A stretch of 64,000 nt of DNA, taken from positions 18,662,001 to 18,726,000 of the forward strand of contig CATNEN010000001.1 of the NCBI GenBank assembly GCA_950097015.1, read 5' to 3'. Shown one piece after another: positions 18,326 through 54,138 of this stretch (positions are counted from its first letter, which is position 1; every line of letters starts with the position of its first letter). Position numbers and translations under genes: made by a program. The stretch comes from Macrostomum hystrix (lineage: Eukaryota > Animalia > Platyhelminthes). The notes beneath the pieces are model-generated. The model did no database searches. It was not told the origin of the DNA and saw nothing but the letters and a program-made list of their open reading frames with translations.

Positions 18326-18859
18326 TCATGTTGACATCGCGCACGTCATCCTGTTGACATCAGAATTGTAGCTTAAAGCTGCAGCGGAGCGTTGATTACA
18401 ACTGTAGTCTTGGGCCCCAGGCACCTGTGGATTTAAATCAACTGAATGAGCACTCGTAGGTTGACCAGCTGCTGGAAGAGCCGGCGATATTTCGTTGGCA
18501 GGAGTTTTACCACCAACAGCGATGTTGCGTAGCTCGTCAATGAAACTTAATGCAGCAAGGTTAGCAGCTTTGAAGTCCTCAGTCGTGATGATGATTCTAT
18601 CGCCTCCTCTTCTCCCGCGATTGTGAATGAGCATGTGCATATCGAATCCCGAAGTGATAGTAGAGCAATATGGACAGAGATAAAAAATAGGAGACAACTC
18701 TAGCTTATGTTGTAGGCGACAGTAGCGAAGGTTGGCGTCGATTCGCCTTTCAGATAGGTCCGGATGAGCTCCGCGGCAATGCTGTTTAAAACCTGATGCC
18801 CTGCCACTCCAGTGGCACTGAAGACACGTAATCGCGGCGTGAATGTTGGGAGGTGTCAT
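18326..18859 (-). CDS. Stand-alone double C2H2-finger + helix module protein (177 aa)
   Basis: ATG at 18859; CLQC-x11-H-x4-H and CPYC-x9-H-x3-H followed by an amphipathic helix (AALSFIDELRNI); upstream tttcAG acceptor (~18886) and TATA-like TTTATATA (~18961-18968). Confidence 0.7.
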   Translation of the reverse strand: MTPPNIHAAITCLQCHWSGRASGFKQHCRGAHPDLSERRIDANLRYCRLQHKLELSPIFYLCPYCSTITSGFDMHMLIHNRGRRGGDRIIITTEDFKAANLAALSFIDELRNIAVGGKTPANEISPALPAAGQPTSAHSVDLNPQVPGAQDYSCNQRSAAALSYNSDVNRMTCAMST

Positions 18860-19767
18860 CAACTTTCAATGGAAGTGATGCTGGCCTGAAATTTATTCGA
18901 GATTGAAGTTTGAAACGTTGACAATTAAAGCTAGACCCTAAATGAAGGCGTGAACGCTAATATATAAACGCTAATAAGGACATTGATCTGCCATGCATAA
19001 AATTGTATAAAGCAGGCAGTCTATTCTCAAATGCACATCTATCTCCATTTGTCCTAGTTGTTCCCTGCACAGCCAACTAATGAGCAGAAAGAAAGCGCAT
19101 CTAAAAAACAAGCAATTAAAAAACGAAAACGCGAAACACTGTTTAGGAGCCCCTCCATTTATTTGACAGACAATGAAACTGTGAGCTATATAATAATAAT
19201 AAAACGGAATTGAACGGAAAAGCTGATAAATGAACGAATTTAATAGTGTCATTAGTCCCACGAATAAAAACAGCTAACGTAAGTACACTGCCAGTCCGCT
19301 GGATAGTGCAAACATGCACGGTAAGATTGGCAGCGCACGGTAATTAGCAGATTTTATTCGCGCTCAACGAGTCCGCCGCGAGAAGGCTGACACATGGGCT
19401 CATAGCGCTTTAAAATGTAGCGCTTCACAGCACATTGAATTGCATGTGCAAAGTGACCTGTAAATATTTTGCTAGTTGAAAGAAATATGTGTCCAAACTT
19501 TGGGCTTACTGGTATTAATTTTAGCGTTCTTAAACTTAACGCTTCACAGCACATTGTATTGCATGTGCAAAGTGACCTGCAAAAATTTTGCTAGTTGAAA
19601 GAAATGTGTCCAAATTTTGGGCTTAATGGTATTAATTTTAGCGATCTTAAACTTAACGCTTCACAGCACCCACACAAAAGTAGGTGCAGAGTGACTTTAC
19701 AAGGCAGCGCTTGACTTCAATTAAAAACACAAGTAACGGTGGAATCATCAGTACACTGGTTGGATAC

Positions 19768-22215
19768 TTAATCGGAGTCGCTATCAGAAGACTCCGAATC
19801 TTCTGAAGCAACCGCTTCATTAGCGCTCTGACTCAGTGTGCTGAGGGAGAATTTATTCGCAAGAAGATATTTTACAGCATCAGTCACGCTTTTACTTGCA
19901 ACATCTTCAAGCAGTCTTCTAAACAATTCCCGAAATTGAGCGGCTAAGCCCGGCTGATTCGCTAAGTCATCACAGAGGCTCTGCAAATTAACCTGAAGGT
20001 CAACCCACTCATCTGAAATAATATGCGCTTCTTCTTTTAGGCGTTTATATTTGTTACTGACGTCTATAGCCCGCTGACGAAATCGGATGGAAAGGTCGGT
20101 TCCAGACAAATGTTCATATTTCGCACTACGCGGTTTTTTATATTCATCGAAAGAAGCTCTGTCTTCAATTGGAAGACGAGCGTAGAGTTTTTTCATGTCG
20201 GATGCATAACTTTTAACCTTTCGCAAGCACATTCTGGTTTGACTTTGGCCAACTGACTTACCAACCTGTTTACTCCAATGATCTCTGTGCACTGCAAGAG
20301 CGCGTAGCTCACATAGGATATCATCTTCCGAGTTGTGTACAGCTACTCGGAGGGAATCTTCATACCATTGGGAGCCTAAATCCAAAATTTCATCCTCAGA
20401 GATGACCAGACTGTCATTTCGGACCCCCGAGTGCTGCAAAATCGCAGACTGGCTTTGTAGCTCTTTTAGTTCACTTAGAATGCTTTTTCCCGCACCTACC
20501 ATAAGCTTAATACGTTGTGTAAACCACCCAGAAGCGCTAAGAAGCTGTTGTGCATTAAAGAAGTATAGAATATGCGCCATGTATTGTGCTCGTCGGTCTT
20601 TCCGCATGTACTTTAAAAACTTACCGAACGGCCTGAGTTGAGACCAGGCTCGCTCAGTATTCTCTCCATCGCATAGACCTGCGCCTGGAGTAACGCGAAC
20701 AGAAAACTTTTTTTGACAACTGGGCAGGTGACCAAGAGCATGAAAAGCGTTTATTGCACAGCTACTCGCTTGAATGTTGGCACCAGACTTCGCAATAGCG
20801 GATTTAACCCGGCTGGATACGCGACAGCCTGTGAATTGGGATAAAGAGTAAGTCATGTTGTCATATAACTGTACACAAGCAACAGTATTTCATAGATTGT
20901 ATGCATTTTATAAAATAATAATAAACTTACCCACGTCATATACGACAAGTAATTCCTTAGACACTTTGACGTTTCGCAGAAAGTGTTCAAGGCACTGTTC
21001 CAGGTAGCAAAACTTTTCTCCACCAGTTGTGATATTTGAGCCACACAAAAGGCGATTGTGACGACAGAATAATCCAAAGAAACCCGTGACATCATGTCTC
21101 TGCTCACGGCTTAATGGTTCATGAGCACCGGCCTTCCAATTAGGACAATTCTGTTCCTCTGCTCGATTTTTTGGCACATCCGCTTTAATATCTACATAGA
21201 CAAGCGGCGTAGGTAATGGACGACCATCTGATGGTATTTCCAGTTGTGTACGCCCCCTGGCTTTAAAGCGCTGCCAACCAAATAGAGCATCTGCACAGAC
21301 AACAGTTTTGCGCACAGCGTGATTATCTGGACAGAGAAGACAATTATTTGGCCATTTTGCTGAGGCCATTTGCAGGTGGCGAAACCGCAGCAAAACATCA
21401 TGTCGTTGAATGCGTTGATAAGTGCTTTTTACAAGAGCCAAATTATATGTACCTTGTCCCAGAGTTGGCCCAATGAGCAGTGTACTGACCGCTCTGTGAA
21501 CAGGCAACTGCCCAGTCATACACAAACTGTCTAGCAGGGACAAAAAGGTAAAAGAAAAGAATGCATACCCATCTGAATCAGGCTTTGACCCTTCGCAACA
21601 AGGGAAGAACCCTTGAGAAAGGAGTGCACCAATAAGATCACAGGAGTCGCAGGTAATAAAAATGACCTTTACGCTTCCAGCCAGATCTATAAGGTCAACT
21701 TTTGTAGCCGCACAGACATTCAGATTCAATTTACTAGAAGCGCAGCAAAACATTTCAAAAGCATCGTGAGTAGCATCCAGTTCCTGAAACATTAGACTCT
21801 CCTTATTCCATATGAGAAACTTGTGGGCTGAAAACTTTTTATGCGTCTCATTCTTACAGCTGGCACATAAGCTAAGTCGACAAGTAACACATCGATATAC
21901 ACCTTCGTGCTCATAGCAAGAGGAACACAGATTTAAGAGAAAATGCTTCTCGTAACTACCTCTGTATTTCTCAGCAAAGCTGTCAAAATCTACCCATTCA
22001 ACATCTTCTACTGTAGGAGCAAAAGACTCAGGCATACCGACATCATTCTCGGTGCTAGCTTCCACTGGAACAGGAGTAGTTTCAGACACAGGACGCCGAG
22101 ATGTTGAGCCTCGATTTCGGCCGCTAATGATTGTCTTAATCTTTCTGGGTCGCCCACGACAGCCAGTTTGCAGTGTAGCTTTGACAACACGCTTCAGTTC
22201 GATGCCGCGATACAT
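19768..22215 (-). CDS. KDZ (Kyakuja-Dileera-Zisupton) transposase with AT-hook, B-box-like and CxC cysteine clusters; 2 exons (22215-20931, 20828-19768), 781 aa, apparently intact
   Basis: Splicing the GTAAGT...ttcacAG intron 20930-20829 joins the two ORFs to give YDVG|CR. Motifs: CADALF, GFFGLFCRH, GGEKFCY, YDVGC, FHALGHLPSCQ, GAGLCDGENTERAWS. N-terminal RGRPRK, CSSC..CVTC..LCASC...H...H, CDSCD..LL..GFFPC. 1285+1061=2346 nt. Confidence 0.93.
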
Positions 22216-22821
22216 TGTCTGGAAATGAGAAAGTAATTTATAATCATTGGTTTACAGTATTTAATATTGTAGACAGACAACTGTTTTCTATTTAATACTA
22301 TAAAGTTTTATATATTCTATAATGAAATCATAGCACTTATATTCAACATATATTCCCACAAGTATTGTGGCCATGTAACTACAGTCTGTGGAGATTGCTG
22401 ACCTGCACTTGGGCGTCATTTCTATACACTTGCTTGAATATAAAGAATTGAACATTTACTTAAAAATTTGCACACAAATCCCTTTTTCTCACTCTCACAA
22501 ATTAACACATTACTGCCACCCATGGACTCAATGGAATGTGACAAAGATTGGCAGACTTGGGGTGGCAGTTTGCTCAGCTTTGCCAGGGCCAGACTGTCAT
22601 GCTGCAGTGTCCAGCTGCAGCTATTCTGCCTAGATGATCAGCCTGTCTGATACTGATACCAGCATGGACTTCTCTAATCCTCCAATGGATTGCCACTAAT
22701 CTCAGTCGAATACCTTCTCAAGTGATTGATTTCAAGATTTCAATTTCACTATTTACGATATAAATATTGATCTTAAGTTCAAGGTCCACTGGAAAGAAGC
22801 CTTTATGTGCAAAGAGTATGC

Positions 22822-23255
22822 GGCAATGTTCTACTTCCGTTCGTTATATTATTTTTTCATTTGCAAATGACAGATAACGACAAAAACAAGTTTAACGGTA
22901 ACAATAAGTCTGTAGTTTGATCAGACAGTTCTGAAAAGTCTTGGTCAGTCTTTCTTCTTTCAAACCGGGTAAGTGCCTAATCCAGTAGAGGAGGGCACCG
23001 AAGCTATTCTTGGGGTATAGACAGCGCCATAAGAATTCTTTGAGGTGGCTTTCGAATAGAGCAGCATTCGTGCCATGCATTTGACGCAGCTTGGCCTTCA
23101 CAAAATCTTCAGCTGCAGAATTTCTGTGCCTAAGCTTCCTGTTCCCCCATATTTGCCAGATTTTGCCATAGACATAGATCCAAGTGTCAAGTCACGGCAA
23201 AGCCATGTCAATTCAAACGAAAAAATAATATAACGAACGGAAGTAAAACATTGCC
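22822..23255 (-). mobile_element. Non-autonomous Merlin (IS1016/ISXO2-like) DNA transposon, 434 bp
   Basis: TIRs GGCAATGTTCTACTTCCGTTCGTTAT / ATAACGAACGGAAGTAAAACATTGCC; perfect 8-bp TSD GAGTATGC (22814-22821, 23256-23263); internal remnant KAKLRQMHGT...ESHLKEFLWR matches the ISXO2-type C-terminus. Confidence 0.9.
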
Positions 23256-25230
23256 GAGTATGCATTAGTTTTTTTGAGATCTTGCCCTAATAACTATTTA
23301 CTTTATTTACTATTTACCAAAGCCTACTTGACTCAATGTTAAAGTTACTTATATTGGTGGTGCATGTCACTTATTACATTGTTTATAATTTCTTTCTGGC
23401 ACACAGAGCCACCTTTTTGACTCTGGAAGTAGGCTAGGAGGCTAGGTCTAAAGACCAAATGAAATTAGTGACTGTTGCTTCATAAAAAGTTGCAGAGCTT
23501 GGTACACTGTTAAGCAAGAAATGCAAAGAAACTAGCAGCAGAACTTAATAAATAAAAGTGAATATTATAGTCGGACAACTGTTTCTAATTTAATACACAC
23601 TGGCACAACCTCTAACAAAATTTTGGATTAACCCATCTTCAATGTTAACTAAATATGAGTAAATGCTTATAGGCACTAGCTATAGTACTGGTTTACTGCC
23701 GAGTTAACTAGTTTCTAACCTGCCAAAGATAGTCAGATAATATTTCCTATTCAATACTAGCTATCTAGAGTGTTATATTACATCATATTAACCATGTAAT
23801 TTTGCCATATAGCGACATATGTTATTTTCCAACTGACATTGTTTAGACATTTATCGAGTTTTTAATTACTTTGTGCAAATGACTCTGATTTGTCCAAAAC
23901 TAAGTGAAGAGTGAGGTAAACAATACAAATATTTTTGTTTTTAACCTTAATTACGATTTACGAAGAACGAAATTAGCTACCAAAGTGGCAATAATCTAGA
24001 AAAAGTAACAGTAATGTGGAATGATTGCAATTGGTACAATCTTGTACTTTTTTGTCCCGATTTACCTGTCTTTCACTTTCAGTTGAATTCAAAGAGAAAA
24101 TTAAATTACTAAATTAATTAAAATTCAGTTCAAAATTAAAATTTGAAAAAGCTAAAAACAACATGGCGGACAACTCCGACGAACATGCATCTGAAATTAT
24201 TTAAACCGCGCCAAAAAAATCTGCAGAGCCTTCTTTATGTATATGTCTAAGAACATAATTATTTGTTTTTTCAAAGCAGTATTAAGTAGCCTATACCTTT
24301 ATTACGATTTTGTTTTTTTAAACTCAAACGCTACGAGTACGTTACGGTTTACATACGTAAGTTGCGGGTAATATCGAGCCGATCTTCAAGAAAGGAAAAT
24401 AATGTGTTTCGTAGCTAATTATTTGGAATACCTTGGTTTTTCGAGAATTATTAAATTAAGACCTAATATACCAGAAAGTCTTACGGTTTCCCTACTTTGT
24501 GGCAGAACACGAAAGCTCAGACACTTTTATTAAAAATATATAATATTTGTAGATGAATTAACTAAATCGATGTTTCAGTAGGTTGAACTCGTGCGATTAT
24601 ACTGCTTTTGCAACAGAATGCAATGACTTTGCATCAATTAGATTTATAAATTGGTCGATTATTTATCATGTTGATTTCTGTCGAAAAGGTTAAATGTTCC
24701 GGAAACTTTATGTAACTCTAAACAAAGTAAAACATTTAGATACTGGTGTGAGGCATTGCACTTCGTACCCTACAAAATTTAAACGCTGTTTTGCCGTTTT
24801 TATGCAGTATGTGTTTAAAAAAATCTTTTAGCGAACTATTTTCGCTTCAACCTTTCCTTTAAGTTACTTTTATGCTTTAAAAATAATGATTTTTGCCTTG
24901 CTGGTCTTTATTTAAAACTTTATGGATTACATGCAATGACAAAAATAAGTAGAATGTTTGGTGCAACGATAAATCGATGACTTTCGTTACGGGTGCTAAT
25001 AATTTTGACTTTTGCTGAGTTTGTAATAAATTTGTAATATTGACGTTCACCCTTTTGGTTTTTGAAGCTTTGCAGATAAAATTTGGGGACCTGCTGGACC
25101 CGTCGTTAGATAATGGAGCGATTCGCTAGCTCGCGATATATTTGCTTGCGTTGCTAATATTGCGTTGCGAATTTGATCGCTACGATGGCCATTGCTTAAA
25201 ATAAGAAAGCACAAGCTGCAGCCTGCAGCC

Positions 25231-26191
25231 AAAAAAGTATTCGAACGAAAGAATATATACTAATAAATAGTAATTCTTCGTTGTATTTGGCCAATGTCAT
25301 GTGGTGAAACTGGTAGCACGTCAGCCTGATAACTGCGGGTCGTTGGTTCGACTCATTTTTTATTTAAATTAATGATTATATGTTTTGCAGAACAACAAGA
25401 ACATCATATAAGCCTACTCATTTCTTAATCTGGCTGAGTAAGAAAAAAAGCGGTTTTACGCTGATTTACATAAATATCAGCACTATACAGTACACTCGAA
25501 GCACCAAAGGAATCACATACAGTAGGATAGCCTATATGTTTTGAAAAACTCTGAAAAAGTATTCGAACGAAAGAATATACTTATAAATAGTAATTCTTCG
25601 TTGTAAACTGGCAATGTCAAGTGGTTTAACTGGTAGCACGTCAGCCTGACAACTGCGGGTCGTTGGTTCGACTCATTTTTTATTTAAATTAATGATTATA
25701 TGTTTTGCAGAACAACAAGAACATCATATAAGCCTACTCATTTCTTAATCCGGCTGAGTAAGAAAAAAAGCGGTTTTACGCTGATTTACATCAATATCAG
25801 CACTATACAGTACACTCGAAGCACCAAAGGAATCACATACAGTAGAATAGCCTATATGTTTTGAAAAACTCTGAAAAAGTATTCGAACGAAAGAATATAC
25901 TAATAAATAGTAATTCTTCGTTGTATATGGGCAATGTCAAGTGGTGAAACTGGTAGCACGTCAGCCTGATAACTGCGGGTCGTTGGTTCGACTCATTTTT
26001 TATTTAAATTAATGATTATATGTTTTGCAGAACAACAAGAACATCATATAAGCCTACTCATTTCTTAATCCGGCTGAGTAAGAAAAAAAGCGGTTTTACG
26101 CTGATTTACATCAATATCAGCACTATACAGTACATTCGAAGCACCAAAGGAATCACATACAGTAGGATAGCCTATATGTTTTGAAAAACTC
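25231..26191 (+). repeat. ~320-bp tandem repeat x3, each with a truncated tRNA-like Pol III cassette
   Basis: Units start ~25231, ~25554, ~25874; each has TGGT(GA/TT)AACTGG (A box), CTGA(T/C)AA loop, GGTTCGACTC (B box), then ATTTTTT. Confidence 0.85.
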
Positions 26192-26214
26192 TTAAATTAA
26201 GAAAACTCTTAAAG

Positions 26215-26470
26215 AATTTATTTTTCCAAACATATCGGCAGCATCCGAACCCCACAGAATTGCCGCACAGAACTGCTTTATTCCACGCCAGCCAGAATTA
26301 TTATTACCCGACGAAATGTCGGTACTCATCTGCAGCTGAGTAGACTGTGTGCACATCAGGGCAAAGCAGCTTGCCAAGGGCTGCACGAATAGTTCTAGAC
26401 TAGGTCGGGAGTCGAACCCAGGACCATCTGATCCAGAGTCCGACACCTTACTGACTGAGCTATCCGCCCT
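26215..26470 (-). mobile_element. tRNA-derived SINE
   Basis: Minus strand GGGCGGATAGCTCAGTCAGTAAGG...GGGTTCGACTCCCG head, then a SINE-core-like CCCTTGGCAAG...CTCAGCTGCAGATGAGTACC segment. Confidence 0.8.
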
Positions 26471-26865
26471 CATGGGCAACCTCTCCCCCTCCTCCTCCCC
26501 CCCGTCACCTTCCTATCCCATATCCGAGGCCCACACCAGGAGCGCACCCTGGGCCCATGGGCTGGGCTCATGAGCTGCGATCGGCTAGCCCAGCTCACCT
26601 CACCATGAGGGCACCCTGGCTAGGCGCATAATAAACGCATGAGCTGGGGCCGGCTAGCCCGCGGCCATAGACTGTCCCCTGCGCTTGTTGTAGCCTGCTT
26701 TGTCATAGGCCGAGAGCCCTCAAATATAATGTTGAGCCTGACTGGTTGGGCTCCACACACTCTTCTGTTCCTCCTTTTCTGTCTGCTCCCAGTGAGAGCC
26801 GAGACACTTGAAATTGGAGTTCGTTTTGACTTCTAACACAAGTCATTACACTGCCTATCATCACA

Positions 26866-27340: not shown

Positions 27341-27345
27341 GTATT

Positions 27346-28080
27346 TCAAGCCGTGAATCCCACTTGGACTTTCAGCGAGACGTCGGGCGGATAGATGCCT
27401 TCCCTGTGTAGTGTGAACACGTCTTGGCTGGAGGTGTCTCCAGGAGCTGTACTGTATGCGTTGGCGTGAATCTGCTGTTGGACTCTGTTGCTGCTTAACC
27501 GCGGCTGGCGGCAGGCCTTTGCTAGGTGGTTTGGCTTGCCACAGTTGTGGCAGATTTTGTCCTTGGCTGCGTCACAGGAAGCGTGGCCGCGCTCGCCGCA
27601 GCGGTAGCAGGTCTGTGACTGGCTCTGCCTGGCCTCGCTGTGTGGTCTGCGTTTGTCTGACGCTGTTTGGCTTTTATTGGCCACGCTGGCCACCTGCGAC
27701 TCGGTGGTCTTCTCCATCTCAGCAGCCTGTTCTTCCGCAGCTTCGAATGCTCTGGCCTTCCGCAGCGCGTCTTCCAGTGAGATGTTTGCTTCCTGGAGCA
27801 GCCGTCTGCGCAGCTTGTCGGAGGTGCATGTAGCAACAAGTTGGTCTCGGATGAGGGAGTCGCGTAAGTCGCCGAATTCACATGGTTCAGCAGCCGTCCG
27901 CAGTCTGCTGTACCAAGCTTCGATTTTCTCACCAGATTGTTGAACACACAGACGGAACTAGTATCGAGCGTAAACGATGTTCTTTCTATCGTCGAAGTGT
28001 TGCTTCAGCCCCTTGAAGATTGTCTGCAGTGTGTGCTCCTGCTCCTGGCCGTCGGCGTCAGACCTGGGCTTTGGTAGTTC
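27346..28080 (-). pseudogene. Ty3/gypsy gag fragment
   Basis: One frame reads LKQHFDDRKNIVYARY*FRLCVQQSGEKIEAWYSRLRTAAEPCEFGDLRDSLIRDQLV...LRRRLLQE, then knuckles CYRCGERGHASC and CHNCGKPNHLAKAC; internal TAG at ~27958; no pol or LTR seen. Confidence 0.88.
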
Positions 28081-30260
28081 CCGAATGCTGAGGAGAACTT
28101 ACGCAGCATGTCGTGATTAAACTGGTTACGACGTGCGTCGAAGTTCATCATCTCGTTACACAGTGACTTAAGCAGCTGGCTTTGCCAAAGGGACTTCATG
28201 ATGTGAATATGCTTCTCTTCCGTTAGCATGCCTCCTGTCTGTCGCTGGGCACGCTGGTAATCCATCACGTCGTCCCTTGCTGCCCGATTCGTATTTTTGC
28301 GAGCAGTCAGCAATTTGTTTGCGATCTGCAGCAGACTTGCAGGGCTTACTGGGAGCTGGTACTTAAGGTAATCATACTCGTCAGATTCGGCAGCGGCGTT
28401 GAACTCAGTGGCAAGCCAGTGAATTGATAATATTAAATTCGCCACCCGCTTGCCACCGACGCGCCAAAAAATGCAGACATTAAGCGTCTTAAATTCAAAA
28501 AACTCGTCCATTGTTGGCGGTCTTCCGAAAACTGCTGTAACGCGTTGCCAGCAATGATTGATGTTGGCGAGTTGTTCATTCAGCACCCTGTGGCGCTGAA
28601 AGAATCTGCCAGCGTCAGGTTCGTCGGGCTGCGCCGGGTCGACGGTTGGGTCACGGGCACCACCAAACTTAGAGGTAAACCGACCTCTTTGAGCTCTGTC
28701 CTCGACCACTTGCAAAACCCGGTCCAGTTCACCAGCGCTGTTTACACTAACGCGTCGGCGAGGATGTATATGCTTATCCGGACGAGTCCAGTACGGATGG
28801 TGCAAGTCGGATTGCCACGGCAGAGAAAAACTGGGCCCGAATTTTTTACGCAAAGCGTGTAGCATCGCGTAGGAGATTTCCGCAGTCATCTTGCGGCCCT
28901 TCTCTCCGAAAGGAAAGCTTTCCTCAACGGAAGCGAGTTCCTCGCGGCTAATTTGCTCAGGGTCGGGCCATAATTCAAACTGTGGCTGATTCCTGCCAGC
29001 AGCTGGTGCTGCTGCTGCCGCTGCCGGAGGTGGCGCTGGCGGATTCGGCACATTGGCTGATGCTGCTGCAGCCGTAGCAGGTGGCGGGGGCGGCTGAGGT
29101 ACATCCGAAAATTGGACGTCGTCTAATACTTCCACAACGTCAAACTGTATGTTGTCAGGGTCAACATCACAATCGAGGTAGGGCACAAGGCTAGGCATAG
29201 AGGATGACCTTCGACTCTGCACGGGCCTTGCCTTTACGGCCAGCAGGGTCGTTTGGGGCTGCTGAGGCATCGCTAGCCCGCGCCCAAAGCAAGGTCTTGC
29301 TCGGACAGCCGGCTGGGGCGTTTGGGGCTGCTGAGGCATCGCTAGCCCGCGCCCAAAGCAAGGTCTTGCTCGGACAGCCGGCTGGGGCGTTTGGGGCTGC
29401 TGAGGCATCGCTAGCCCGCGCCCAAAGCAAGGTCTTGTTTGGAAAGCCGGCTGGGGCGTTTGGGGCTGCTGAGGCATCGCTAGCCCGCGCCCAAAGCAAG
29501 GTCTTGCTCGGACAGCCGGCTGGCCGCGATCTCGGCCAACTGCAGACCCAAGTCCAGAAGGAGTCGTTGCTACAGCACCACGACCACGGCCAAGTCCAGC
29601 AGCAGGTAAAGGCTGGCTGGAGGACTCAGCGGGTCGGTAGGTCGGTAAGGACCGGCTCTGGGTAAAAGACAGGCTCTGATTAAACTGAACGTCGAGCTGC
29701 GTCACCTGATTGAGGCCGCTGCCACCCGCACGTCGAACAGGGGCTGCACGTGCCTCAAGCCTCACAGTAGAATACTGGGGCCACTCAGATGGATGCTTCA
29801 CCTGATTCGTATCGCCATTTTGGACGTATGTACTCAGGTATTGGACATAATCATCCAGCATTTTTCGGCAGCGCTGCACATTTTCCCGCCCTCTGATGAG
29901 ACTCGCATCTTCACCTGGATGTGTCTCCACAAAGTGCTGGCGCAGTCTTTGCCCGATGCGGCTACATTTTGGACAAAGCAACAGAGGAGGTTTCCTACCT
30001 GCTCGATTCTCGTCGATCCTCGCCTCGTAGTTCGCCAGGGCGCTGATCACAGCTAGACGAGTCGAGTTTGTCTCATTGTGCATGGATTTGACGTGATCCA
30101 TCAGTTTGTCGCCTCGCTTCGTTGCTGCGCAGAAGGGGCACTTCACTGGAGCACCATGGGTTCGGCCGCGCCTCGGATTGTCGTCGTCGGATGACTCTTG
30201 GGCAGCCCCTTCAGGAGGCTCGTTATCGGACAGTGTGTCGTTATCGTCCAAAGTAAACAT
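28005..30260 (-). pseudogene. Double-C2H2-module protein with a tyrosine-recombinase-like C-terminal region (paralog 1), truncated by the gypsy fragment
   Basis: 751-aa ORF: CPFC..RGDKLMDH..H / CPKC..LRQH..H, 69-bp repeat linker, then a domain alignable with the 38760 gene (WP.PE..S.E, FS.PW..D..HPYW, GRF.S..GGARDP, FWRVG.KRVAN). Homology stops at LRKFSS (~28090); the last ~25 aa are out-of-frame gag. Confidence 0.7.
29250..29525. repeat. 69-bp (23-aa) coding tandem repeat x4
   Basis: GTTTGGGGCTGCTGAGGCATC at 29251, 29320, 29389, 29458. Confidence 0.95.
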
Positions 30261-30544: not shown

Positions 30545-31565
30545 ATGGCTAAAAATTTAACTACAAATTTTTTTAATTGCCCCTATTGTGATGCAAGCAT
30601 GAGGAGTAACCATCTGCGCGATCACATAGGCCGCATGCATGGACGCGATCCCGACGTGGTGCTGCAATTTCTTCGAGCAAGCTCTCGAGGATCCATTGCT
30701 TTGTAAGTTGTGCTTGCATATTTGCCAACCTGCTTCGATGCGCAAGCACCTTCAGGCCCTCCACCCGGACAATTTGACCAAACATTGAAACATTCTGTCA
30801 GGGCACAAAGCTGCCGAAGAGTGCAGGGCGCTGGCTAGAGCCTACATGGCTTCACTTGCGGAATACGTCAATGTTCCCATCGGTCAACGCCCTAAGGCGA
30901 TACCGACGCATCCGAAGCCAAATTTCTTGGTGCCCGAATGCGAGGCGCCCAAAGCAGTGGTGCCCGAATGCGAGGCGCCCGAAACTGATCTGACTGCTGC
31001 AGTAGCATCAGGCCATTCACAGTCAGCTGCTTTTTTTAGCCCGCCACTTCTTCGAAGCTGTGTGGTTCAACGACCCCGCGCCAACTTTAATGAAGTTCAG
31101 AGACTGCTGAGTAGTCTCGACGACAGCGCAGTTCATGTTGTTCAAACCGGCACAAAGGGCAAAGGCGCAATTGCAGCATGTCCTCTGGCAAAGGGAGCCT
31201 TTGTGGCAGAATATCAAAGGATCCTCCTGAGTCAGGAGGAAGGTGAAGCCAGAGAGATGCTGATGCAAGCATCCGGCGAAGATCCGTGGCTGCTATTTAA
31301 TTTCAAGTCAAGTGGCAGAAAATATGTGATTGATGCCTCTGGAAGCGAGCGTGCAGGGCGCTATCTAAATCATTCTAGAAGGAACCCGAACTGCAAGGCA
31401 TCGACTTTCGTGGTTAGCCATGGCGATCGTGGCAAGATCCCAACAGTCTACTTCAGCACCACCCGAGATGTCAATGAAGGTGAAGAGCTGTTGTTTGACT
31501 ACCTCGGAGGCGAACCGGAGCTCTCCTTGGAAGTACTCCAAAATTGTCCATGGTTGCTTGAGTGA
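30545..31565 (+). pseudogene. Double-C2H2-module + PR-Set7/KMT5A-like SET lysine methyltransferase; frameshift ~30685 and in-frame TGA ~30786, SET domain itself open (30846-31565)
   Basis: SET motifs KGKGA, FVAEY, IDAS, GRYLNHS, GEELLFDY and terminal PWL as in SET8. Upstream reads MAKN..CPYC..RSNHLRDH..H /fs/ LLCKLC..MRKH..H..KH*NILSG..ARAY, in frame into MASLAEY. No introns. Confidence 0.85.
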
Positions 31566-36924: not shown

Positions 36925-38228
36925 TCACTCAGAAAGTCTTTAGCCGGAACAAGAAAACAGCAACATATGAACTAAAAAACCATTACAACTGCTCAAAGTA
37001 CTCTCCCCCCGCATTGATACAGGCTTGCATCCTGTGGAACCAGCTGTCGAAGCACTGCCGCCAATCCTCATCCCGGAGCTCCCCGATGACGTCTTTGAAC
37101 TCATTCACAGCTTCTTCCGGCGAAGAAAAAATCTGGCCCTTTAATATCTTCTTGCACTTCAGGAATAAAAAAAAGTCGCACGGTGCCAGGTCTGGACTGT
37201 ACGCAGGGTGAGTCATCAGCTGGACACCACAGTCGGCCAGAAACTCGAGAGTTTGAGCTGCCGTGTGCGCACTGGCATTGTCGTGGTGCAGAAGCACCCC
37301 ACGCATTCCGCACCTTGGGCGCCTCTGGCTCACAGCAGAAAAAACTTTGGGCAGGCAAACCGTTGTGTACCAGTCAGCGGTGACTGTCCGGCGATCTTCC
37401 AGTGAAACGGAAGCCACATGTCCAGTGCGCATGAAGAAGCAGGCCACCATCTGCTTGCCGACACTCCGGTTGCGTCGAAACTTGGTTGGGCTGTCTTCGT
37501 CTCTGAAGGTTTACATGGATGACTGGCGCTTGTTTTCGGGGTCGTATTGATAAATCCAGGTCTCATCTCCCGTGAGGATGTCCCAGATACGCCGGCTGGT
37601 CCCAGATTCGAATTTCTGCAGCATAAATCGGCACCAAGCCACCCGGGTGTCCCTCTGCTCGTCCGACAGCTGATGGGGGATCCACCGGGAAGCCAGCTTC
37701 CGCACTCCGAGGTGTTCGTGCAGAATGGTGTGCACACTCCCCGATCCAATGCCCATCTCCTGCTGGATCTGCTGGTAGGTCACTCGCCGGTCAGCGTCAA
37801 TCATGCTGGACACAGCGCAGATATTTTCTGGGGTCACTGCGTCGCAGGGTCTCCCGGATCGATGCTCATCTTCGAGGCTTTCTTGACCTCGGCGAAACTC
37901 AGCGAACCAGTTTTTGACGGTTGCGTATGACGGACACAGATGAGCGAAAACGTCTTGTAAAGTTTGAAATGAATCGGCCGGCGACTTGCCTTGCTTGAAA
38001 TGCAAGTACATCATAGCTCTGAAGTCACGATTTTCCAGCTTCATTGTGCAATTGAACGGCGCAAGGGGTGAACTGACCTTGGCTCACTGCAGTGGACTCA
38101 AAAGTAACTGCTTCTGTTTGAAAATTTAGCTATAAGACTTTTAAAAGGTGGTCTTCACCATAGACAAATTTCATGCTTCTGCGTCTCGTGGATCATACTC
38201 AGGCTAAAGACTTTCTGAGTGACCCTCT
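36925..38228 (-). mobile_element. mariner (DD34D) element, ~1.3 kb
   Basis: 21-bp perfect inverted match TCACTCAGAAAGTCTTTAGCC (36925-36945) / GGCTAAAGACTTTCTGAGTGA (38202-38222); left outer TIR bases lost. Confidence 0.92.
36983..38044 (-). pseudogene. mariner transposase (353 codons) with one in-frame stop
   Basis: WIPHQLS, TGDETW, HHDNASAH, YSPDLAPCDF; the two ORFs share a frame and are separated only by TAA at 37511-37513, where a Trp is expected (QSSM*TF). Confidence 0.95.
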
Positions 38229-38759: not shown

Positions 38760-39622
38760 ATGGCTGCAGCATGGCCTGAAGATTTCGAGATCGATCCTGA
38801 GGTTTCAGATTTGATAGAAAATCTTTTTAATTTTGACAAAGGGGACGACGACGACGACCAGGACGTGCGCGGCGCTGCAACTGCTGGTCGCGGTCGGCGA
38901 CAACGTGGCCCAAAGGGTTCATCTACTGGGCACGGTGAGTACAGGTCATGCCCACTGTGTGGGGCGACTGACCTGCGCTCTGATAACCTGCGCACTCACC
39001 TTATCGCGGTCCATCGCGAGGCCCACCCGATTCGCCGATCTGCGATCGCAGGTCTGGCAGCGCTTGAAGCGCCCATAGCAAAAAATGCGCGCAACTCTAG
39101 ACTAGGACTTTTTATGTGCGCCGAATGCCCGCGAGTTGGGCAGCGGATGGGCCAGCACTTTAAGAAGCGACATCCGCAAAAAGATCCTAGTACTGTCCAG
39201 GGCCGCGAAGCTAACCAGCGTATGCGAAATATGCTGGTTGACTTCGTTGACTATCTGCGACAGTATATTCGCGCTGGCTCGGTGGACCAACTCCGTCACC
39301 CGAAAGACTGGCCGAAATATGCAGCGCAAACTGCACCAGCCTCCCGCCCAGTAGGCCGTCCAGTAGGCGGCTCTGAGATTGAAAGACAATTTGCCTTCTC
39401 GGAGCAGTTCTCCTCAAGCTGCCGAGTGGGCGAACGGAGTGGCTCGGCTCCGCCTACAAATCGGGTGATGCCGCAAACAGGAACTCCGAATCAGACACTT
39501 CAAATTCAGAGAACAGGTAAGATATAAAAACACATGTCATTATTATGAAGTATATTTACTATTAATATTATTATTAATATTATTGTTATTATTATCAATG
39601 TTATTATTACTATTATTATTAC

Positions 39623-39653
<31 letters not shown>

Positions 39654-41366
39654 ATGACTATTGACTATATGTACAATCTTAATTCGATTCATCTATTCGC
39701 AGGATCAGAACCACCGGTGCAGAATCCTCGTACGTTGAATGCACCGCCTCCTGTGGCGGCTCCGCGGTTGCGCCTGCCACAGGTGACGCCTGGCCTAGCG
39801 CGTGGAACAGTGCGCATGATGACGCCGGTGCTCGAGTCACCGGTCAATACGCCGCCGCCGGAAGCAGGCGCAGGTGAAGCTGCAGGCGCGGATGCAGAGT
39901 GGCCATGGCAAGCAGGCGCATGTGCAGTGCCAACGCCAGTCACATGTGCACCGCCACCAGGCGCACGAGCGACACCATCCTCTGGACAAGCCCTGCCACC
40001 AGCCGCACATGCAGTGACACCATGGCAGACAGGCGCGTGTGCAGTGCCAACGCGTCACATGTGCACCGCCCCTTCAGGCGCACGAGCGACACCATCCTCT
40101 GGACAAGCCCTGCCACCAGCCGCACATGCAGTGACACCATGGCAGACAGGCGCGTGTGCAGTGCCAACGCCAGTCACACGTGCGCTGCCACCAGGCGCAC
40201 CAGCGACACCATCCTCTGCACAAGCCCTGCCACCAGCCGCACATGCAGTGACACCATGGCAGACAGGCGCCTGTGCAGTGCCGACGCAAGCTGCGCGAGA
40301 ACCACCACCAGCTGGAAATACACGGCCTTTCTTTGAAACTTGGCCCCAGCCTGAAAATGTGTCCGAAGAAGATATGGCCAGAATTGAGGACAGCCTGCCA
40401 GAGTGGACGGGGAGGCACTTGTATAGTGACACCAGCTACGCCACTCTGTTTTTGCTTCGCAAAAGATTTCCGGGCTTCTCAATTCCGTGGTCAACCGACG
40501 TGTCCCATCCATATTGGGAGGACCCTTTTAAATATCAACATCCGCGTCGGCACCAGACTGTCCAGCAGACGGACATGCTTGAGCGGCTGCTCAATGTTGT
40601 CAAGGATCGGGCTCGCACCGGCAGGTTTGTGTCCCAGCTCGGAGGGGCTCGCGACCCTGTTGCTAGACCTGCCTTGCCGAGTGAGCCGGACGGCTCTGCG
40701 CAATTCCAGCGCCACAAGGTTCTCACCGAAAAGGTGAAGAACCTGGTCTGCCTCTGGAAGAGGCTGGCAGCAGGCCTGGGCCAGATGCCATCGCTGAAAG
40801 ACCTGACGGACGAAAGAATTCTTTCGGCCACATGCTTTTGGCGCGTAGGCCCTAAGCGCGTGGCCAATTACATAACTGCCATCAACTGGTTTGTCGGCGA
40901 ACTATGCGCCGCGATGCGGTCAGAAGAGTACGCCTACCTTGCTGGTGGCCAGATTGACATTCCGCCTGAGGCGCTAGAAGATCGCCTCAAGACACTGCTG
41001 TCGTGTCGGCGGAATGCAAATATCGCGGCCCGCGTCGACGTTCAAACCTATCAGCGCGAAGAGCGCCACGCTGGTGGCACACTCACGCTGGAGTTCAGCA
41101 TTCAGTTGATGGCTAAAGTGTGGCATTCCGATCTGATTACTCGTCTCCAAGACGAGATCTTGCAGCTGAATGAAAAATCGCCGGCATTGACACCGCAGCA
41201 GTTGAGGCGTTATTGCTCGGTGCTGATCCTGAGCCACATGCGGTACCAGCAGTTCAGGATGGACGCCTACCGCCAACTTCGGTTCTTCCACCTGGACCCA
41301 CCTCAGCTGCTAATACTGGATGACGTAATACGTAATATTATATTACGTAATAATATTAAGTCATAA
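38760..41366 (+). pseudogene. Double-C2H2-module protein with a tyrosine-recombinase-like C-terminal region (paralog 2); exons 38760-39516 and 39703-41366, 806 aa, probably 3'-truncated at ~41310
   Basis: Phase-1 intron GTAAGA...ttcgcAG joins the 255-aa and 570-aa ORFs in frame (RT-G-SEPP). CPLC..RSDNLRTH..H / CAEC..MGQH..H. KRVANYITAINWF resembles a core-binding helix; LILSHMRYQQFRMDAYRQLRFFHL resembles box I with the first catalytic Arg. Sequence turns into TAATACG repeats after DPPQLL; HxxR and Tyr motifs absent. Confidence 0.72.
39900..40285. repeat. 117-bp (39-aa) coding tandem repeat x3.3
   Basis: CCATGGCA at 39903, 40020, 40137, 40254. Confidence 0.93.
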
Positions 41367-48151: not shown

Positions 48152-48705
48152 TTAGCGGAATGACGTAAAAAAGTCGTCATTTTGGGCCGGTCTACTAAGA
48201 GCTTTCGGAAGCAGCCAACATTTTTGCCCTGGGCGGCCAGTTGCGATTTCGGATGTTAGGCGGTAAACTCCAATCCTAAGTGCCAGAGAGTCGTAAGGAT
48301 AGTTGTAGACATTGTCGAATTCCTGGAGCACTCTGCCACTTACCATGCCGTCCGGTTTAACCTTATCAATATGAATGCATGTCGTCCCAACGAAGCAGCA
48401 ATTGTCACCCTTCTTCGTGCTGAATTCTATAGTTGTTTCTGCTGGCTGGCTGAGGTACATATTTCGTACTTGTAGTACTTGACAAACTGAATGAGCGGCG
48501 ACATGCCTGGTGACTTTGACCCTTCTCTTGATTGCTCCCAGATAGCTTTCGAATGGAAATGTACTAAAATTATTTAAGCTACCTAGCCTTCTAACAAACT
48601 GGTCGAGGTGAAGAAGTGCATGAATATTGTAGCTAATTGATTTTTGGCCAAATATCTTTGACATCTGTTCGACGAATACCTCGATGCAGCTTTTCGCTGA
48701 ATCCC
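48152..48705 (-). pseudogene. C-terminal fragment of a CACTA/EnSpm-like transposase
   Basis: FVEQMSKIFG...SYNIHALLHL...LGSLNNFSTFPFESYLGAIKRRV matches the H..LH...GPL...S.FPFE motif; N-terminus replaced by a TAGATTCTCATCC repeat (48705-48870). Confidence 0.8.
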
Positions 48706-49238
48706 ATAGATTAGATCCTAGATTCTCATTCATCGATTATCTTAAATTCTCATCCTAGATTATCATTCTAGATTATCATTCTAGATTCTCATCCTAGATT
48801 TTAATCCATCGATTATCCATCGATTATCTTAGATTCTCATCCTAGATTCTGATCCTAGATTCTCATCATCAAGAACCCTCATATATTTTGCTGTTTAAAA
48901 GTCACGTTATTCATTTTTAGTTACATTCTGTTTTGTCTGTCCACTGTCTCTTTTTCTCCATCTCCATACGCACACCTCTACCTATCTTACCTATCTACCT
49001 ATCTCTATCTACCTATCGAATCTCAATAAATCGATAATGAATAATAAATCACTAACAACGATTATCCACCAAAATTGGATTATCTAATTACAATCACTAT
49101 TATTGATAATCAATCAATATTGATAATCATCCAATGCCAGTAACCCCAACCTTTTCCTGACTTATTTATCCTCCAATTTATCCGACCTAACAGGACGTAT
49201 CCACTCGTTCTGCGTCCGACACCGACGGCTTTTTTGGA

Positions 49239-51097: not shown

Positions 51098-51281
51098 ACT
51101 AATGCGAAACTAAAAATTTTAATTGTTTTCTTTGATCTCTCTCTGACTTATCATGTCATTAATGGCATTAATAAAATAATTAAAACTTTAAATAACTGAC
51201 TTCCCTGTACACCTGGGAACATTCGTAAATACAACTCAACTCGGATTCCTGCGAAATCTACTGCATCTAACTACCACACTT

Positions 51282-51639: not shown

Positions 51640-52009
51640 GGTGTCCCAATAGATTTGAGCACAGTTTATCGAGTGGGATTCAATTGAAAATCAATCTAGA
51701 AATGATTTCCTACACGACTGAGTTGGTTTCATGATTTCAAATGATTTCCATTTGAACTTATTAACCTGGAAAGTCAAAGCTTAAAAAATACAGCGCAGCC
51801 TACTAACAGTAGACTTTGAGGATATGCCCCGAATTTAATTTACCCTTCTCACCCACCTCCCACCGGCGGGATCCCACCGGTTTGGCTATACGCCCCGCCG
51901 GCGGGGCGCTTGGCCAAACCGTACGCCTCCCCACCGGCGCCCGGCGGGAGGGCGCATAGTGGGGCGTACAGAGGGGCGCATAGTAAATGTCCCACCGGGT
52001 TGCAACCAG

Positions 52010-54138
52010 ATGGCCTCACACTTTGCCTGCCCAGCATGTGACGACGGAAAGCTATTCCGTTCTGACAATCTCCGGTGTCATATGGCCGAAAAACATCATG
52101 CCAAACAGGAGGCAATGGATGAGACCCTTAAGTATTTGCACGCCAGATCGAAGCCTGGAGTATTGATGTGTACGTTGTGCACATGTTTCAGGCTTCGAGC
52201 TGGCCTGAGAGAACACTTGAGAATAAACCATGGGCAAACACCAGCCCAGATAAAAGAAATTTTCACATCCTCAAATATTGGAAGACTATTCAAAAGAGTA
52301 TTTGACATCTTTTGAAGATATTTTGGCCAGCGGTGCCTGGCCTGAATGTCTACCCCCGCACCCTGCTGCCAAAGGCCAGGCAAGCCCTGAAGGCGCCACA
52401 AATGAAGTCTCCAACACTGCTGGGCGAAAAAGGCGGCGTATAGACTCGGCGGCTCTGGTCTCTGGTAAGTTTTGTTTTGAAAATTAGGCTTACTTGCATG
52501 CAAATTTTATTAATTTTATGCCAAGAATTCCAATAACTTGCGATAAAAATCTGTATATATTTTAACAATATCATGTGAACCATCTCATTTTAACTTTCAA
52601 CAGACTAGTGGCCAAATTGCTGAGGCCTACAGCCTCCTGCGGCAGGCCGTTAAAGAGGCTGGGCTGAAGGTAACTGTGGGTTGCTGTTAAATATATTGAT
52701 TGTAAATTGCTGTTCGTCATTACTTACTCTAGCTATGAAAGATAAATTATGAATTTTTACACTGGCTAACTCTGGCACGAAATGCCCCACACTTTGATTC
52801 ACAGCTTTCAGAGAACCTAGAAGAAAGGTGCAGACACGCCGATAATCTATTACGGCAGGCTGGCCAAGCCAATGGCGCTGAGGCCACAGCCGCCGCCACA
52901 GCTGCCGCCACAGCCGCCGCCACAGCCGCCGCCACAGCCGTCGCAGCAGCATCGGACGAAACTGTAAGTCTTCTGGATATGCAAAACACTTCTTACTAAA
53001 TTAGTTACTGGCAAAATGCGTCACCCACTTGAGTGTTCCTGACAGTTACTTTATTTTTTTCAGCTTAAGCTTCTAGCACGTCTGCTGGCCGAAAGGCCAC
53101 GGAAAGTCGTTTCCCAGCGCCGAGGCATCAAGCTCACTGCGGAGCACATACAGATCTTGTGCTCTCGGCGCTGGTTCGACGACGTGCTCATTAATTTTTT
53201 TGTCATGCGTCGCGCATTCTAAAGTGTACCCTTTTCTAACAAAATTTTCGGAAGCGCTAATAAATGGAAACAGTGTTTCCGCTTTTACGAAGAGGGTAAG
53301 TTAAAAATCAATTCCGCTTTATCTTATTATTCAATCGCTTACAGCCTGTGTTATGTTAAGATATGAATTTTTTTTAATAAGTTGACATTATTAAGGTCCT
53401 GAAATTTCATACTCAGGTGAACATATTTGACTACGATCTTCTAAAAATGCCAACGAACACCGGCCAGCATTGGATGCTGCACGCCATTGATATGCGCGCA
53501 AGAAAGGTGCTCGTAGCCGACAGCGTGCTGTCCCTAGGCCGGCCGTCCACCAACCATCTCATTTTACATTTTTTGGGCGCTGAAGCGCGAAGGCAGCAGC
53601 GCCCACACGTGCATTTTGAAGAAGCGCAGATGGATGTATTGCAACAGGAGAACGGATATGACTGCGGCGCATTTGTGTGCCTCTTCGCCGAGGCATTATG
53701 CCGCGGACAGCAGCTTGCCCAGTTAGTCCAGGTAAATATTTTTTGCAAATAAATATCTGCATCCTTTAGTAGTGGGTTTGGCGAAATACTGGCGCAGAAT
53801 AGAACCTCTATTAAAAACAAAAAATAAATAAAAGCACCAGTGAATGATCAAATTCAGAATTTCGATGCATTAGCGCAGGGCAAACTAGATTAAACTGCTG
53901 CTTACAATGCACCTTTTGTGTAATTACAATTTCGGGCTAAGAAAATCCTATTTAACTTATAATCCGTTTAAACGCAAATAATCACCCGTTTCTGAAATCA
54001 GGACGAGCATCCCAGGACGAAGATTTTGACCACAATTCTAAAAACAATAATTAACAATAAAAACCATTTACATTTCAGAGCAGATCACCATACAGACTTA
54101 CAGCATCCCCTGATGTATATGCCATGTGCTCAGCGTGA
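52010..54138 (+). pseudogene. Double-C2H2-module + Ulp1/SENP (C48) SUMO-protease-like gene, multi-exon, frameshifted
   Basis: Exon 1 from ATG 52010: CPAC..RSDNLRCH..H / CTLC..LREH..H /fs ~52275/ EYLTSF..PPHP, donor 52465. Small exons ~52604-52669 and ~52805-52963. Exon 53064-53295: RRWFDDVLINFF../fs/..FTKR. Exon 53417-53731: GQHWML, VADS, QQENGYDCGAFVC (His-Asp-Cys triad intact). Probable last exon from ~54079. Confidence 0.82.

Follow-up and report, generated by a model that had tools for sequence, protein, structure and literature searches.

Transposons that carry chromatin enzymes are known in few lineages, and how these enzymes are aimed is little understood. Ulp1 is carried by several transposon superfamilies, the Zisupton transposase has been described with an Ulp1-like domain, and in plants En/Spm TnpA is an element-encoded accessory factor. 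Fungal KDZ (Kyakuja-Dileera-Zisupton) elements carry TET/JBP cargo genes (PMC12730594), and that paper cites HarbingerS and Phytophthora MuDR families as SET-carrying DNA transposons and VANC of the VANDAL elements as a plant anti-silencing factor. Oomycete Cryptons encode a C48/Ulp1 peptidase beside their tyrosine recombinase (PMC3212892).

Here we analysed 64,000 nucleotides of the flatworm Macrostomum hystrix (positions 18,662,001-18,726,000 of contig CATNEN010000001.1, assembly GCA_950097015.1; hereafter the window), for which a sequence-only reading had proposed five genes sharing one N-terminal double-zinc-finger module. All five modules, M1 to M5, were found at the proposed places:

18326-18862 (-), M1 module ORF (ORF list and profile)
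28005-30260 (-), M2 module ORF (ORF list and profile)
30545-30788 (+), M3 module (two-frame reading and profile)
38760-39527 (+), M4 module ORF (ORF list and profile)
51959-52315 (+), M5 module ORF (ORF list and profile)

They have the proposed architecture in common, namely CxxC...H-x4-H, a linker of 21-34 residues and then CxxC...H-x3-4-H. In the explanation that we prefer, the module would serve for targeting: by binding nucleic acid or chromatin it would bring a partner enzyme to particular loci, plausibly a KDZ element's own repeat arrays. It is combined with a SETD8-like methyltransferase, a PIAS protein, an orphan recombinase-like domain and possibly Ulp1, and also occurs alone; a KDZ transposon carries three tandem module genes, each behind the same ~420-bp upstream repeat, and the window holds one internally deleted KDZ copy (with M1 only) beside a second cluster of truncated or decayed genes, M2-M5. 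Taken whole, we regard this explanation as probable on balance. Its demonstrated parts (the family, the fold prediction, the partner list and the transposon linkage) are jointly held with high confidence; on the targeting function, with the binding, target and anti-silencing effect that it would entail, our judgement is nearly evenly divided and tilts slightly to the negative.

With profiles from which one group had been left out, every omitted group was recovered at 45-96 bits and E <= 1e-6 (Z = 1.8e9). The tail after finger 2 on its own exceeded 299-300 of 300 shuffles in seven of nine groups and the linker on its own did so in six of nine, that is, tail-only and linker-only profiles pick out omitted groups against shuffles. 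On these sequence comparisons M1-M5 are one family and not chance C2H2 look-alikes. What emerged was spacer and helix homology instead of the generic C2H2 similarity, and genome matches mostly inside KDZ copies instead of the dispersed single-copy host genes, that the sequence-only reading had set against its own proposal, and its central idea of a shared N-terminal unit on different C-termini, strongly linked to mobile DNA, is supported. Among 1.84 billion representatives, whole-profile single-unit matches (59-105 bits) comprised only Macrostomum lignano proteins and one source-unknown protein of a Logan assembly, and a Pfam scan of ten further profile matches from other organisms returned only generic finger proteins, one with a TIR domain. 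A word-based search with module alignment A5 gave nothing at E <= 0.001, a blank of little weight because known members were missed as well. No Pfam model reaches its cut-off on the module, the best being zf-Di19 (13-25 bits against 27.5), with zf-C2H2 at 13 bits against 25.2. Together with the lack of a clear solved-structure match, this agrees with the earlier suggestion of a module family without prior description, and by sequence we consider the module a previously undescribed protein domain, so far found only in Macrostomum. Supported pairs in the module tree were limited to M2 with M4 and L049 with P0031 (two PIAS-type sequences, see below), and we therefore claim no order of fusions.

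The module, ~115-130 residues long, starts with a near-classical C2H2 finger followed by a long helix and continues with a short C2H2 finger and a second long helix, often with a PLPxYP-like motif; it forms the N-terminus of its proteins and is an exon of its own in at least one gene. In 13 aligned sequences C, C, H and H are invariant in both fingers, and the module has the Cys2His2 ligand spacing of a classical C2H2 finger. Finger 2 is short (9 to 12 residues from the second Cys to the first His) and the two fingers lie far apart, without the canonical linker of DNA-binding arrays. The zf-Di19 family (PF05605) and the finger pairs of ZNF451 and ZNF462 show the same zinc ligand pattern and weakly similar individual fingers (13-25 bits), whereas only the Macrostomum family has the helices of the linker and tail and the PLPxYP motif. 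AlphaFold2 confidently predicts a single compact unit (pLDDT 89.4, pTM 0.79) with two long antiparallel helices, H34-54 and H93-116. Foldseek searches of the PDB with this model gave no match at E <= 0.001, returning just generic finger arrays with a TM of about 0.2, and VIA-align wide gave helical hairpins and coiled coils (best Z 4.7); after both searches, no known fold was assignable to the whole module. All modules are basic (net charge +2 to +12, pI 8.3-10.2).

The two long antiparallel helices, the hairpins and coiled coils as best structural neighbours (albeit at Z <= 4.7) and the presence of three module proteins on one element would also suit a protein-protein docking or oligomerisation domain, whose helices form a bundle shared with other module proteins or the transposase to assemble a cargo complex instead of binding DNA. 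We consider this unlikely in view of the monomer model, which is already confident and compact, and of the uniformly basic modules. Against the targeting role that we prefer, in turn, count the distance between the fingers without a canonical linker, the short finger 2 and the occurrence of the domain beyond mobile DNA.

M1 lies within a KDZ element whose features in the window are as follows:

19768..22215 (-), KDZ transposase gene in two ORF pieces (Pfam KDZ, PF18758)
13400..26600, approximate, no strand, internally deleted KDZ element copy (depth of aligned copies)
14411-16947, 142-bp x 17.9 tandem array within the KDZ copy
25232-26196, 320-bp x 3 tandem array within the KDZ copy
19109..19552 (-), upstream repeat unit in the window KDZ copy (matches three places in the complete copy L031)

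Pfam KDZ confirmed the transposase gene above the cut-off of 26.6 on both ORF pieces (59.9 and 38.6 bits); the gap of ~50-100 nt between the pieces is probably a short intron, and the transposase has an N-terminal B-box-like zinc finger. The genome contains 104 KDZ matches and at least 14 copies of this element, which are 96-99.7% identical and have in common the sequence flanking the cargo genes on either side; the element has long repeat arrays near both ends and is recently active. In a search for TIR and TSD, copy boundaries were ragged in the 10-kb loci compared. Module matches co-locate with KDZ matches across the genome, most of the 37 module profile matches lying inside copies of this one element. 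Complete copies have the gene order KDZ, module-SET, 254-aa module gene and 179-aa module gene (M1 type), and the cargo ORFs are intact in nine of 14 copies (179-aa), eight of eight (254-aa) and six of seven (SET exon). In the KDZ-borne module-SET gene, a GT-AG intron joins the module to the SETD8-like SET to give a 300-aa product (candidate exons were joined by script solely as a check that the frame stays open), which equals the annotated M. lignano protein P0008 in length, and the identity of 60% to the M. lignano counterpart suggests long retention of module-SET.

In L031, three direct repeats of ~420 bp with 99% identity lie one upstream of each module gene. The matching unit in the window is the likely site of the deletion by which this copy lost two of its three module genes and retained M1, the third cargo gene, a stand-alone module protein of 178 aa with the module at 18509-18847 (own-genome profile match E 2.3e-40, about 14 copies; 45 bits when omitted from the profile). 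The five genes thus do not form the single toolkit that the sequence-only reading had seen in them: M1 sits on the internally deleted KDZ copy, and M2-M5 lie outside it, truncated or decayed. Like the fungal TET/JBP elements, the Macrostomum KDZ element is large and multi-gene, has a transposase of the same family (PF18758) and places a chromatin or epigenetic enzyme beside it. By contrast, its cargo consists of a SETD8-like lysine methyltransferase and two zinc-finger-only proteins instead of a TET/JBP dioxygenase, the same N-terminal module and the same upstream repeat recur in all three of its cargo genes, and its host is a flatworm. HarbingerS and the Phytophthora MuDR families, compared here by citation, are likewise DNA transposons encoding a SET histone methyltransferase, but differ in transposase superfamily and host.

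Within the second cluster, M3 leads into a SET gene, as the following features show:

30545..30703 (+), M3 piece a, finger 1 and linker start (24.4 bits, profile positions 3-46)
30639..31565 (+), M3 piece b in the +1 frame, finger 2, stop, tail helix and SETD8-like SET (46.9 bits, profile positions 47-112)
30786-30788 (+), in-frame stop within M3 piece b
30846-31565 (+), SET ORF downstream of the M3 module (Pfam SET 60.2 bits)

A module-SET fusion hidden by a frameshift and a stop had been postulated here, and M3 indeed reads via one of each into the SET ORF: the two pieces, split by the frameshift, abut at profile positions 46|47 (the stop was read through as X for profile scoring). With these two lesions the window SET gene is a pseudogene. 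The SET domain itself, also part of the earlier proposal, is closest to SETD8/KMT5A, which was the top solved match for the window copy (E 7e-13) and for L047 (1.5e-22), with the next family at 1e-12 and 4e-13, respectively. The SET ORFs contain the NHS, ELLxDY and C-terminal PWL motifs, and judged from sequence both SET domains are of the SETD8/PR-Set7 (KMT5A) type. L047, an intact module-SET gene of 407 aa, occurs once in this genome. The same combination occurs in P0008, P0058 and P0060, and the module is joined to a SETD8-like SET in at least five lineages.

A further partner is a PIAS SUMO E3 ligase, identified from its Pfam domains: P0031 combines the module with PINIT (43.4 bits) and zf-MIZ (76.2 bits), and at L049 the module, PINIT and zf-MIZ follow one another on one strand. 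The module-PIAS gene adjoins a second PIAS gene, its surroundings yielded neither a KDZ nor any other transposase, and the module is present at one of the eight PIAS-type loci in the genome. Since no transposase was detected near the module-PIAS gene and L047 is single copy in this genome, the domain extends beyond mobile DNA. A SUMO ligase and a deSUMOylase would have opposite effects, so the module may also serve host genes or host defence.

Gene capture by DNA transposons is common. On this basis the module could be a host gene-regulatory domain, the KDZ element having merely captured and duplicated a host module-SET gene, the other window copies being pseudogene debris and the domain having no role in transposon biology; the setting of module-PIAS, the intact single-copy L047 and the broken state of M3, M2, M4 and the Ulp1 gene (see below) are consistent with it. 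This too we find improbable, given that the cargo ORFs are mostly intact, that the same 99%-identical repeat precedes each cargo gene, and that the M. lignano counterpart points to long retention of module-SET.

As to the targeting role, a compact zinc-finger domain common to three cargo genes of a young animal KDZ element is a concrete candidate for an aiming device, and it recurs on a SUMO ligase and a recombinase-like protein. VANC and TnpA are related to the proposed role in concept, as element-encoded accessory proteins that recognise the element's own repeats and change its chromatin state, which the module proteins might do as well; there is no relationship in sequence or fold, and the accessory proteins here include a catalytic histone-methyltransferase-like domain. 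Hints of such a role are indirect, namely the basic charge of the modules and the repeat arrays of the KDZ element. If the module binds the element's repeats, it would be an animal counterpart of these plant factors; otherwise it remains a new domain family, and one that goes with an unusual expansion of SETD8-like genes. In the sister species M. lignano, RNAi and transgenesis are available. The boldest version, in which the module is a sequence-specific reader of KDZ repeats, the element aims an H4K20-type methyltransferase and two adaptors at its own chromatin, a recombinase and a deSUMOylase are directed likewise by related elements, and the host has placed the same domain on a PIAS SUMO ligase to silence the element, we regard as unlikely; if true, transposon and host would use one address tag in an arms race between them in an animal.

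In other animals, transposons are silenced through the action of SUMO ligases (Drosophila Su(var)2-10, mammalian KAP1). With PIAS belonging to this class, the module at a single PIAS-type locus and no transposase found near it, some fusions, above all module-PIAS, might conceivably be host defence, in which a transposon-derived recognition domain directs SUMO-dependent silencing in an arms race; we think this very unlikely, as the PIAS module is just 20-25% identical to the KDZ cargo modules. The least credible reading, whose probability we take to be negligible, is generic C2H2 resemblance with chance spacing and no specific family: the top database matches by total score are long poly-C2H2 proteins and Pfam returned generic finger models below their thresholds, but in the profile search of 1.84 billion representatives generic poly-C2H2 proteins reached <=30 bits per unit and ended near profile position ~80-95, whereas family members gave 45-105 bits across positions 3-120, and on these scores, with those of the leave-out, tail and linker profiles, we reject it.

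The sequence-only reading had called M2 and M4 recombinase-like. Their parts are:

29766-30164 (-), M2 module
28083-29198 (-), M2 orphan C-terminal domain
38928-39326 (+), M4 module within ORF 38760-39527 (46.6 bits when omitted from the profile)
39654..41366 (+), C-terminal part of M4 (paralogous to the C-terminal domain of M2, with 43% identity)

In M2 the module is followed by a Pro/Gln-rich repeat region and the orphan domain. M2 ends before the putative recombinase-like motifs and the M4 C-terminal part just past the first putative Arg box, so neither window copy extends to the putative catalytic residues. The earlier label comes down to motif spacing in a longer relative, P0156 (97% identical to M2, ~400 aa longer), with the candidate tyrosine-recombinase residues R383, K420/K422, K511-x-x-R514, H541 and Y550; Lys stands in place of the first His of the R-K-H-R-H/W-Y series, and the putative catalytic His and Tyr are 9 apart, as in XerD and Cre. 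Searches were blank: P0156 gave no relevant match in Pfam, PHROGs or NCBIfam or, by phmmer, among PDB sequences, the M2/M4 domain matched no Crypton, DUF3504 or phage-integrase model, and word-based homologue searches returned only P0156 itself. The AlphaFold2 model of P0156 (mean pLDDT 38) was too poor for fold comparison, and a cluster annotated as integrase among the ESM Atlas neighbours is no more than a lead. From its sequence, we class the M2/M4 C-terminal part as an orphan domain with putative tyrosine-recombinase-like motif spacing. The M2/M4 loci resemble oomycete Cryptons in bringing a recombinase-type gene, putative here, and an Ulp1 gene together on mobile DNA, but differ in lacking a match to the models above and, in the window copies, the catalytic part.

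The M5 ORF encodes both fingers and the linker (51.9 bits, positions 3-86, when omitted from the profile); its tail was not recognisable as a family tail in the tail profile tests. A hidden canonical tail was dropped as a candidate, as no GT-AG intron was found that joins the finger frame to a +1-frame peptide ending in PPHP, and this peptide has no family-tail score. On the same strand, 0.7 kb away, lies one further feature:

52990..53752 (+), decayed Ulp1/C48 protease gene (N-terminal half in two frames; ORF 53417-53752 keeps the His, Asp and Cys motifs)

Of the module-Ulp1 fusion proposed here, the protease and its frameshift were borne out (Pfam C48 60.3 bits, cut-off 20.7; the ORF has the motifs HW, D and NGYDCG). 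The fusion to M5 was not, and the profile matches among the 1.84 billion representatives included no intact module-Ulp1 protein; Ulp1 is possibly a module partner. Unlike the Ulp1-like domain of the Zisupton transposase, the window Ulp1 gene is separate, decayed by its sequence and outside the KDZ copy. Compared with its paralog L048, it has a frameshift near 53200 that L048 does not share, L048 having a different one of its own, and at these two loci in the genome, the window and L048, the Ulp1 gene is preceded upstream by an M2/M4-type module gene.

The double-zinc-finger module constitutes a domain family that sits at the N-terminus of a set of partners and is triplicated, in a young KDZ element (a Kyakuja-Dileera-Zisupton DNA transposon), behind a common upstream repeat. 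All five copies in the window (M1 to M5) were found where the sequence-only reading had placed them, and every one has the architecture CxxC...H-x4-H, a linker of 21-34 aa and then CxxC...H-x3-4-H. That reading had also proposed a shared unit beyond generic C2H2 likeness, and profile tests revealed the expected homology in both linker and tail. To this end, the window modules, further modules of this genome and four database proteins were arranged in nine groups, the profile was rebuilt with one group omitted each time and the omitted group was then scored. Each of the nine was recognised as one unit and scored 45-96 bits (E <= 1e-6 at a database size of 1.8e9). With a tail-only profile (45 residues after finger 2) the omitted group beat 299-300 of 300 shuffles in 7/9 groups, the exceptions being M5 and L045 (a module locus elsewhere in the genome), and a linker-only profile gave the same result for six of the nine groups. 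Searching 1.84 billion representative proteins with the profile (E <= 0.001) yielded 1326 matches, in which the top summed scores belong to long poly-C2H2 proteins that match in many stretches. Such proteins reach no more than 30 bits per unit, the match mostly stopping at profile position 80-95, and only four clusters match as whole units (positions ~3-120, 59-105 bits). The closest database proteins come from Macrostomum lignano (~60% identity), a level that sets the sequenced worm apart from this species as a congener, and no description of the module was found in the open-access literature. The database protein with the highest summed score, P0001 (3179 aa), has 36 near-identical 83-aa repeats with one C2H2 finger each; this unusual protein is unrelated to the module family.

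The common fold that was sought with AlphaFold2 (13-row alignment) emerged as a confident model (pLDDT 89.4, pTM 0.79) with two beta-beta-alpha fingers and two long predicted helices (residues 34-54 and 93-116), but Foldseek comparison of this model with the PDB returned nothing at E <= 0.001. The predicted fold is compact, and the high pTM suggests one unit rather than beads on a string. In an all-against-all structural search the best Z was 4.7, against generic helical hairpins; these two results do not in themselves establish a new fold. With the modules, no Pfam model reached its cut-off, the best being zf-Di19 at 13-25 bits versus 27.5. All modules are basic (net charge +2 to +12); finger 1 of several members has near-classical C-x12-H spacing and an RSDNL-type helix, and in the short finger 2 the second Cys and first His are separated by 9 to 12 residues.

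A genome-wide profile search (220-Mb assembly) recovered this one family at 37 places, most of them adjoining matches of one KDZ family, in line with the proposed association with mobile elements. Complete KDZ copies, such as the one at locus L031, carry in order the transposase, a module exon and SET exon, a 254-aa module ORF and a 179-aa module ORF (corresponding to M1). The module and SET exons flank a canonical GT-AG intron (L031 2493-2602), and the joined exons, checked for open frame only, encode 300 aa, the length of the annotated M. lignano protein P0008, with which identity is 60-62%. The 179-aa and 254-aa proteins, like L045, are stand-alone modules with no other domain. Each of the three module genes of L031 is preceded by a direct repeat of ~420 bp (1468-1886, 3197-3615 and 4615-5033); these repeats are 99% identical to one another, and the mutual identity of the three cargo proteins is only ~25%. 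The repeats point either to homogenisation under way or to strong constraint on the upstream sequence, and may represent a shared promoter or binding platform. KDZ copies are 96-99.7% identical, and the cargo ORFs are open in 9/14 copies (179-aa), 8/8 (254-aa) and 6/7 (SET exon). We found no KDZ element in the open-access literature with a single N-terminal domain and a single promoter-like repeat common to its cargo genes.

Mobile-element remains fill the window region, whose features include the following.

Features of the window (position, strand, description)
19768-22215, minus strand, KDZ transposase (Pfam)
27346-27957, minus strand, gag-like ORF, two CCHC zinc knuckles
30846-31565, plus strand, SET ORF
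36983-38044, minus strand, mariner/Tc1-type transposase, HTH_48 and DDE_3 pieces
53417-53752, plus strand, Ulp1/C48 fragment

The KDZ copy of the window (~13.4-26.6 kb) has a single repeat of the ~420-bp type (19109-19552) and lacks the SET and 254-aa genes, a loss that fits deletion between repeats. Tandem arrays lie near its two ends, 142 bp x 17.9 (14411-16947, 97% match) near one and 320 bp x 3 (25232-26196) near the other. On visual inspection, the 320-bp unit appears to include a tRNA-like sequence (GGTTCGA, resembling a T-arm).

The module is joined to SET in at least five lineages: the KDZ gene with P0008, an uninterrupted 407-aa ORF at locus L047, the database proteins P0060 and P0058, and M3 of the window, with 28-37% identity between lineages among the pairs compared. 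M3, which lies head to head with M2 (285 bp between them), is a single module broken by a frameshift, as had been surmised for the SET gene: a piece with finger 1 spans profile positions 3-46 (24.4 bits), and a piece in the +1 frame (X at the single stop) spans positions 47-112 (46.9 bits) and runs in frame into the SET ORF. The closest relatives of these SET domains are SETD8/KMT5A, and SETD8-like domains are expanded in the genome (at least 30 places). Most of these places are on one contig arm (C1, 14-20 Mb), and there is a multi-copy class of 189-190-aa SETD8-like ORFs that differs from the KDZ cargo gene. SET genes may also be carried by other element families.

M2 and M4 are paralogs (43% identity) that had been read as two recombinase-like proteins. 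P0156, a protein from a Logan assembly, shares 97% identity with M2 and is ~400 residues longer, and its R383, K420/422, K511-x-x-R514, H541 and Y550 follow an order and spacing that recall tyrosine recombinases. Comparison of P0156 with Pfam, PHROGs, NCBIfam and PDB sequences gave no relevant match, and both window genes lack the P0156-type C-terminal part. The predicted structure of P0156 is unusable, and its language-model neighbours serve as a lead only. The gag-like ORF is located exactly at the M2 cut-off point, and M2 may have been truncated by retroelement insertion. Between module and C-terminal domain, M2 (28900-29500) and M4 (39900-40330) have differing Pro/Gln/Ala-rich tandem peptide repeats, that of M2 being ~23 aa (RPCFGRGLAMPQQPQTPQPAV) x 4.

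The Ulp1 domain of the window is real, with catalytic motifs present. It has a frameshift near 53200 that is absent from its paralog at L048, which has a different one; since each has its own frameshift, both are decaying. In the window, M5 is found 0.7 kb upstream of the Ulp1 domain, on that same strand. At L048 the module fragment in this upstream position is of M2/M4 type, with an M5-type module 21 kb off. A module-Ulp1 fusion, as the sequence-only reading had claimed, is possible, but no module-Ulp1 protein was among the profile matches in the 1.84 billion representatives. The locus L024 holds a shorter, rearranged relative of 33.5-41.4 kb of the window and, inverted, 51.64-51.98 kb too, so that the surroundings of M4 and of M5 are found together at one further locus at least, a hint of a second composite element, perhaps of the recombinase-plus-Ulp1 kind seen in oomycete Cryptons, which carry Ulp1 (PMC3212892). 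With all genes of this second cluster damaged, and the KDZ copy short of two cargo genes, the unity and intactness claimed for the window's genes were overstated. The mariner sits inserted in the repeat-bearing stretch upstream of M4, and L024 lacks this insertion. A 193-aa ORF (48152-48733, minus strand) has a weak match (E 0.079) to DUF4218, which is found in CACTA/En-Spm-type transposases, and may be what is left of a further transposase in the vicinity of M5.

The sequence-only reading was largely right in its observation, and its functional interpretation, an element-encoded anti-silencing or mobilisation toolkit sharing one address tag, is plausible in outline. We infer that the module would most likely serve in targeting: by binding nucleic acid or chromatin it would direct its partner to defined loci, with the repeat arrays of the element itself as the obvious candidate targets. 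Such a role is likened to that of En/Spm TnpA and, by analogy, would resemble that of VANDAL VANC (as cited in PMC12730594). Chromatin-related cargo has precedents in TET/JBP of fungal KDZ elements (PMC12730594) and in SET of HarbingerS and Phytophthora MuDR (as cited there). The main rival explanation is that the module is a docking domain rather than a targeting device.

A partner that complicates a simple anti-silencing toolkit is PIAS. In P0031 and five near-identical M. lignano proteins the module is followed by PINIT and SP-RING, and the same order, module-PINIT-SP-RING, occurs on one strand at L049, beside a second PIAS gene. The genome has eight zf-MIZ loci, to our knowledge more than in most animals, and the module is present at 1/8 PIAS-type loci. 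The PIAS fusion could reflect use of the module by host genes as well, or its redeployment by the host against the element. The two PIAS-type SUMO ligase genes of L049 (574-1965 and 4503-8250; C3:11.609-11.617 Mb) lie in tandem.
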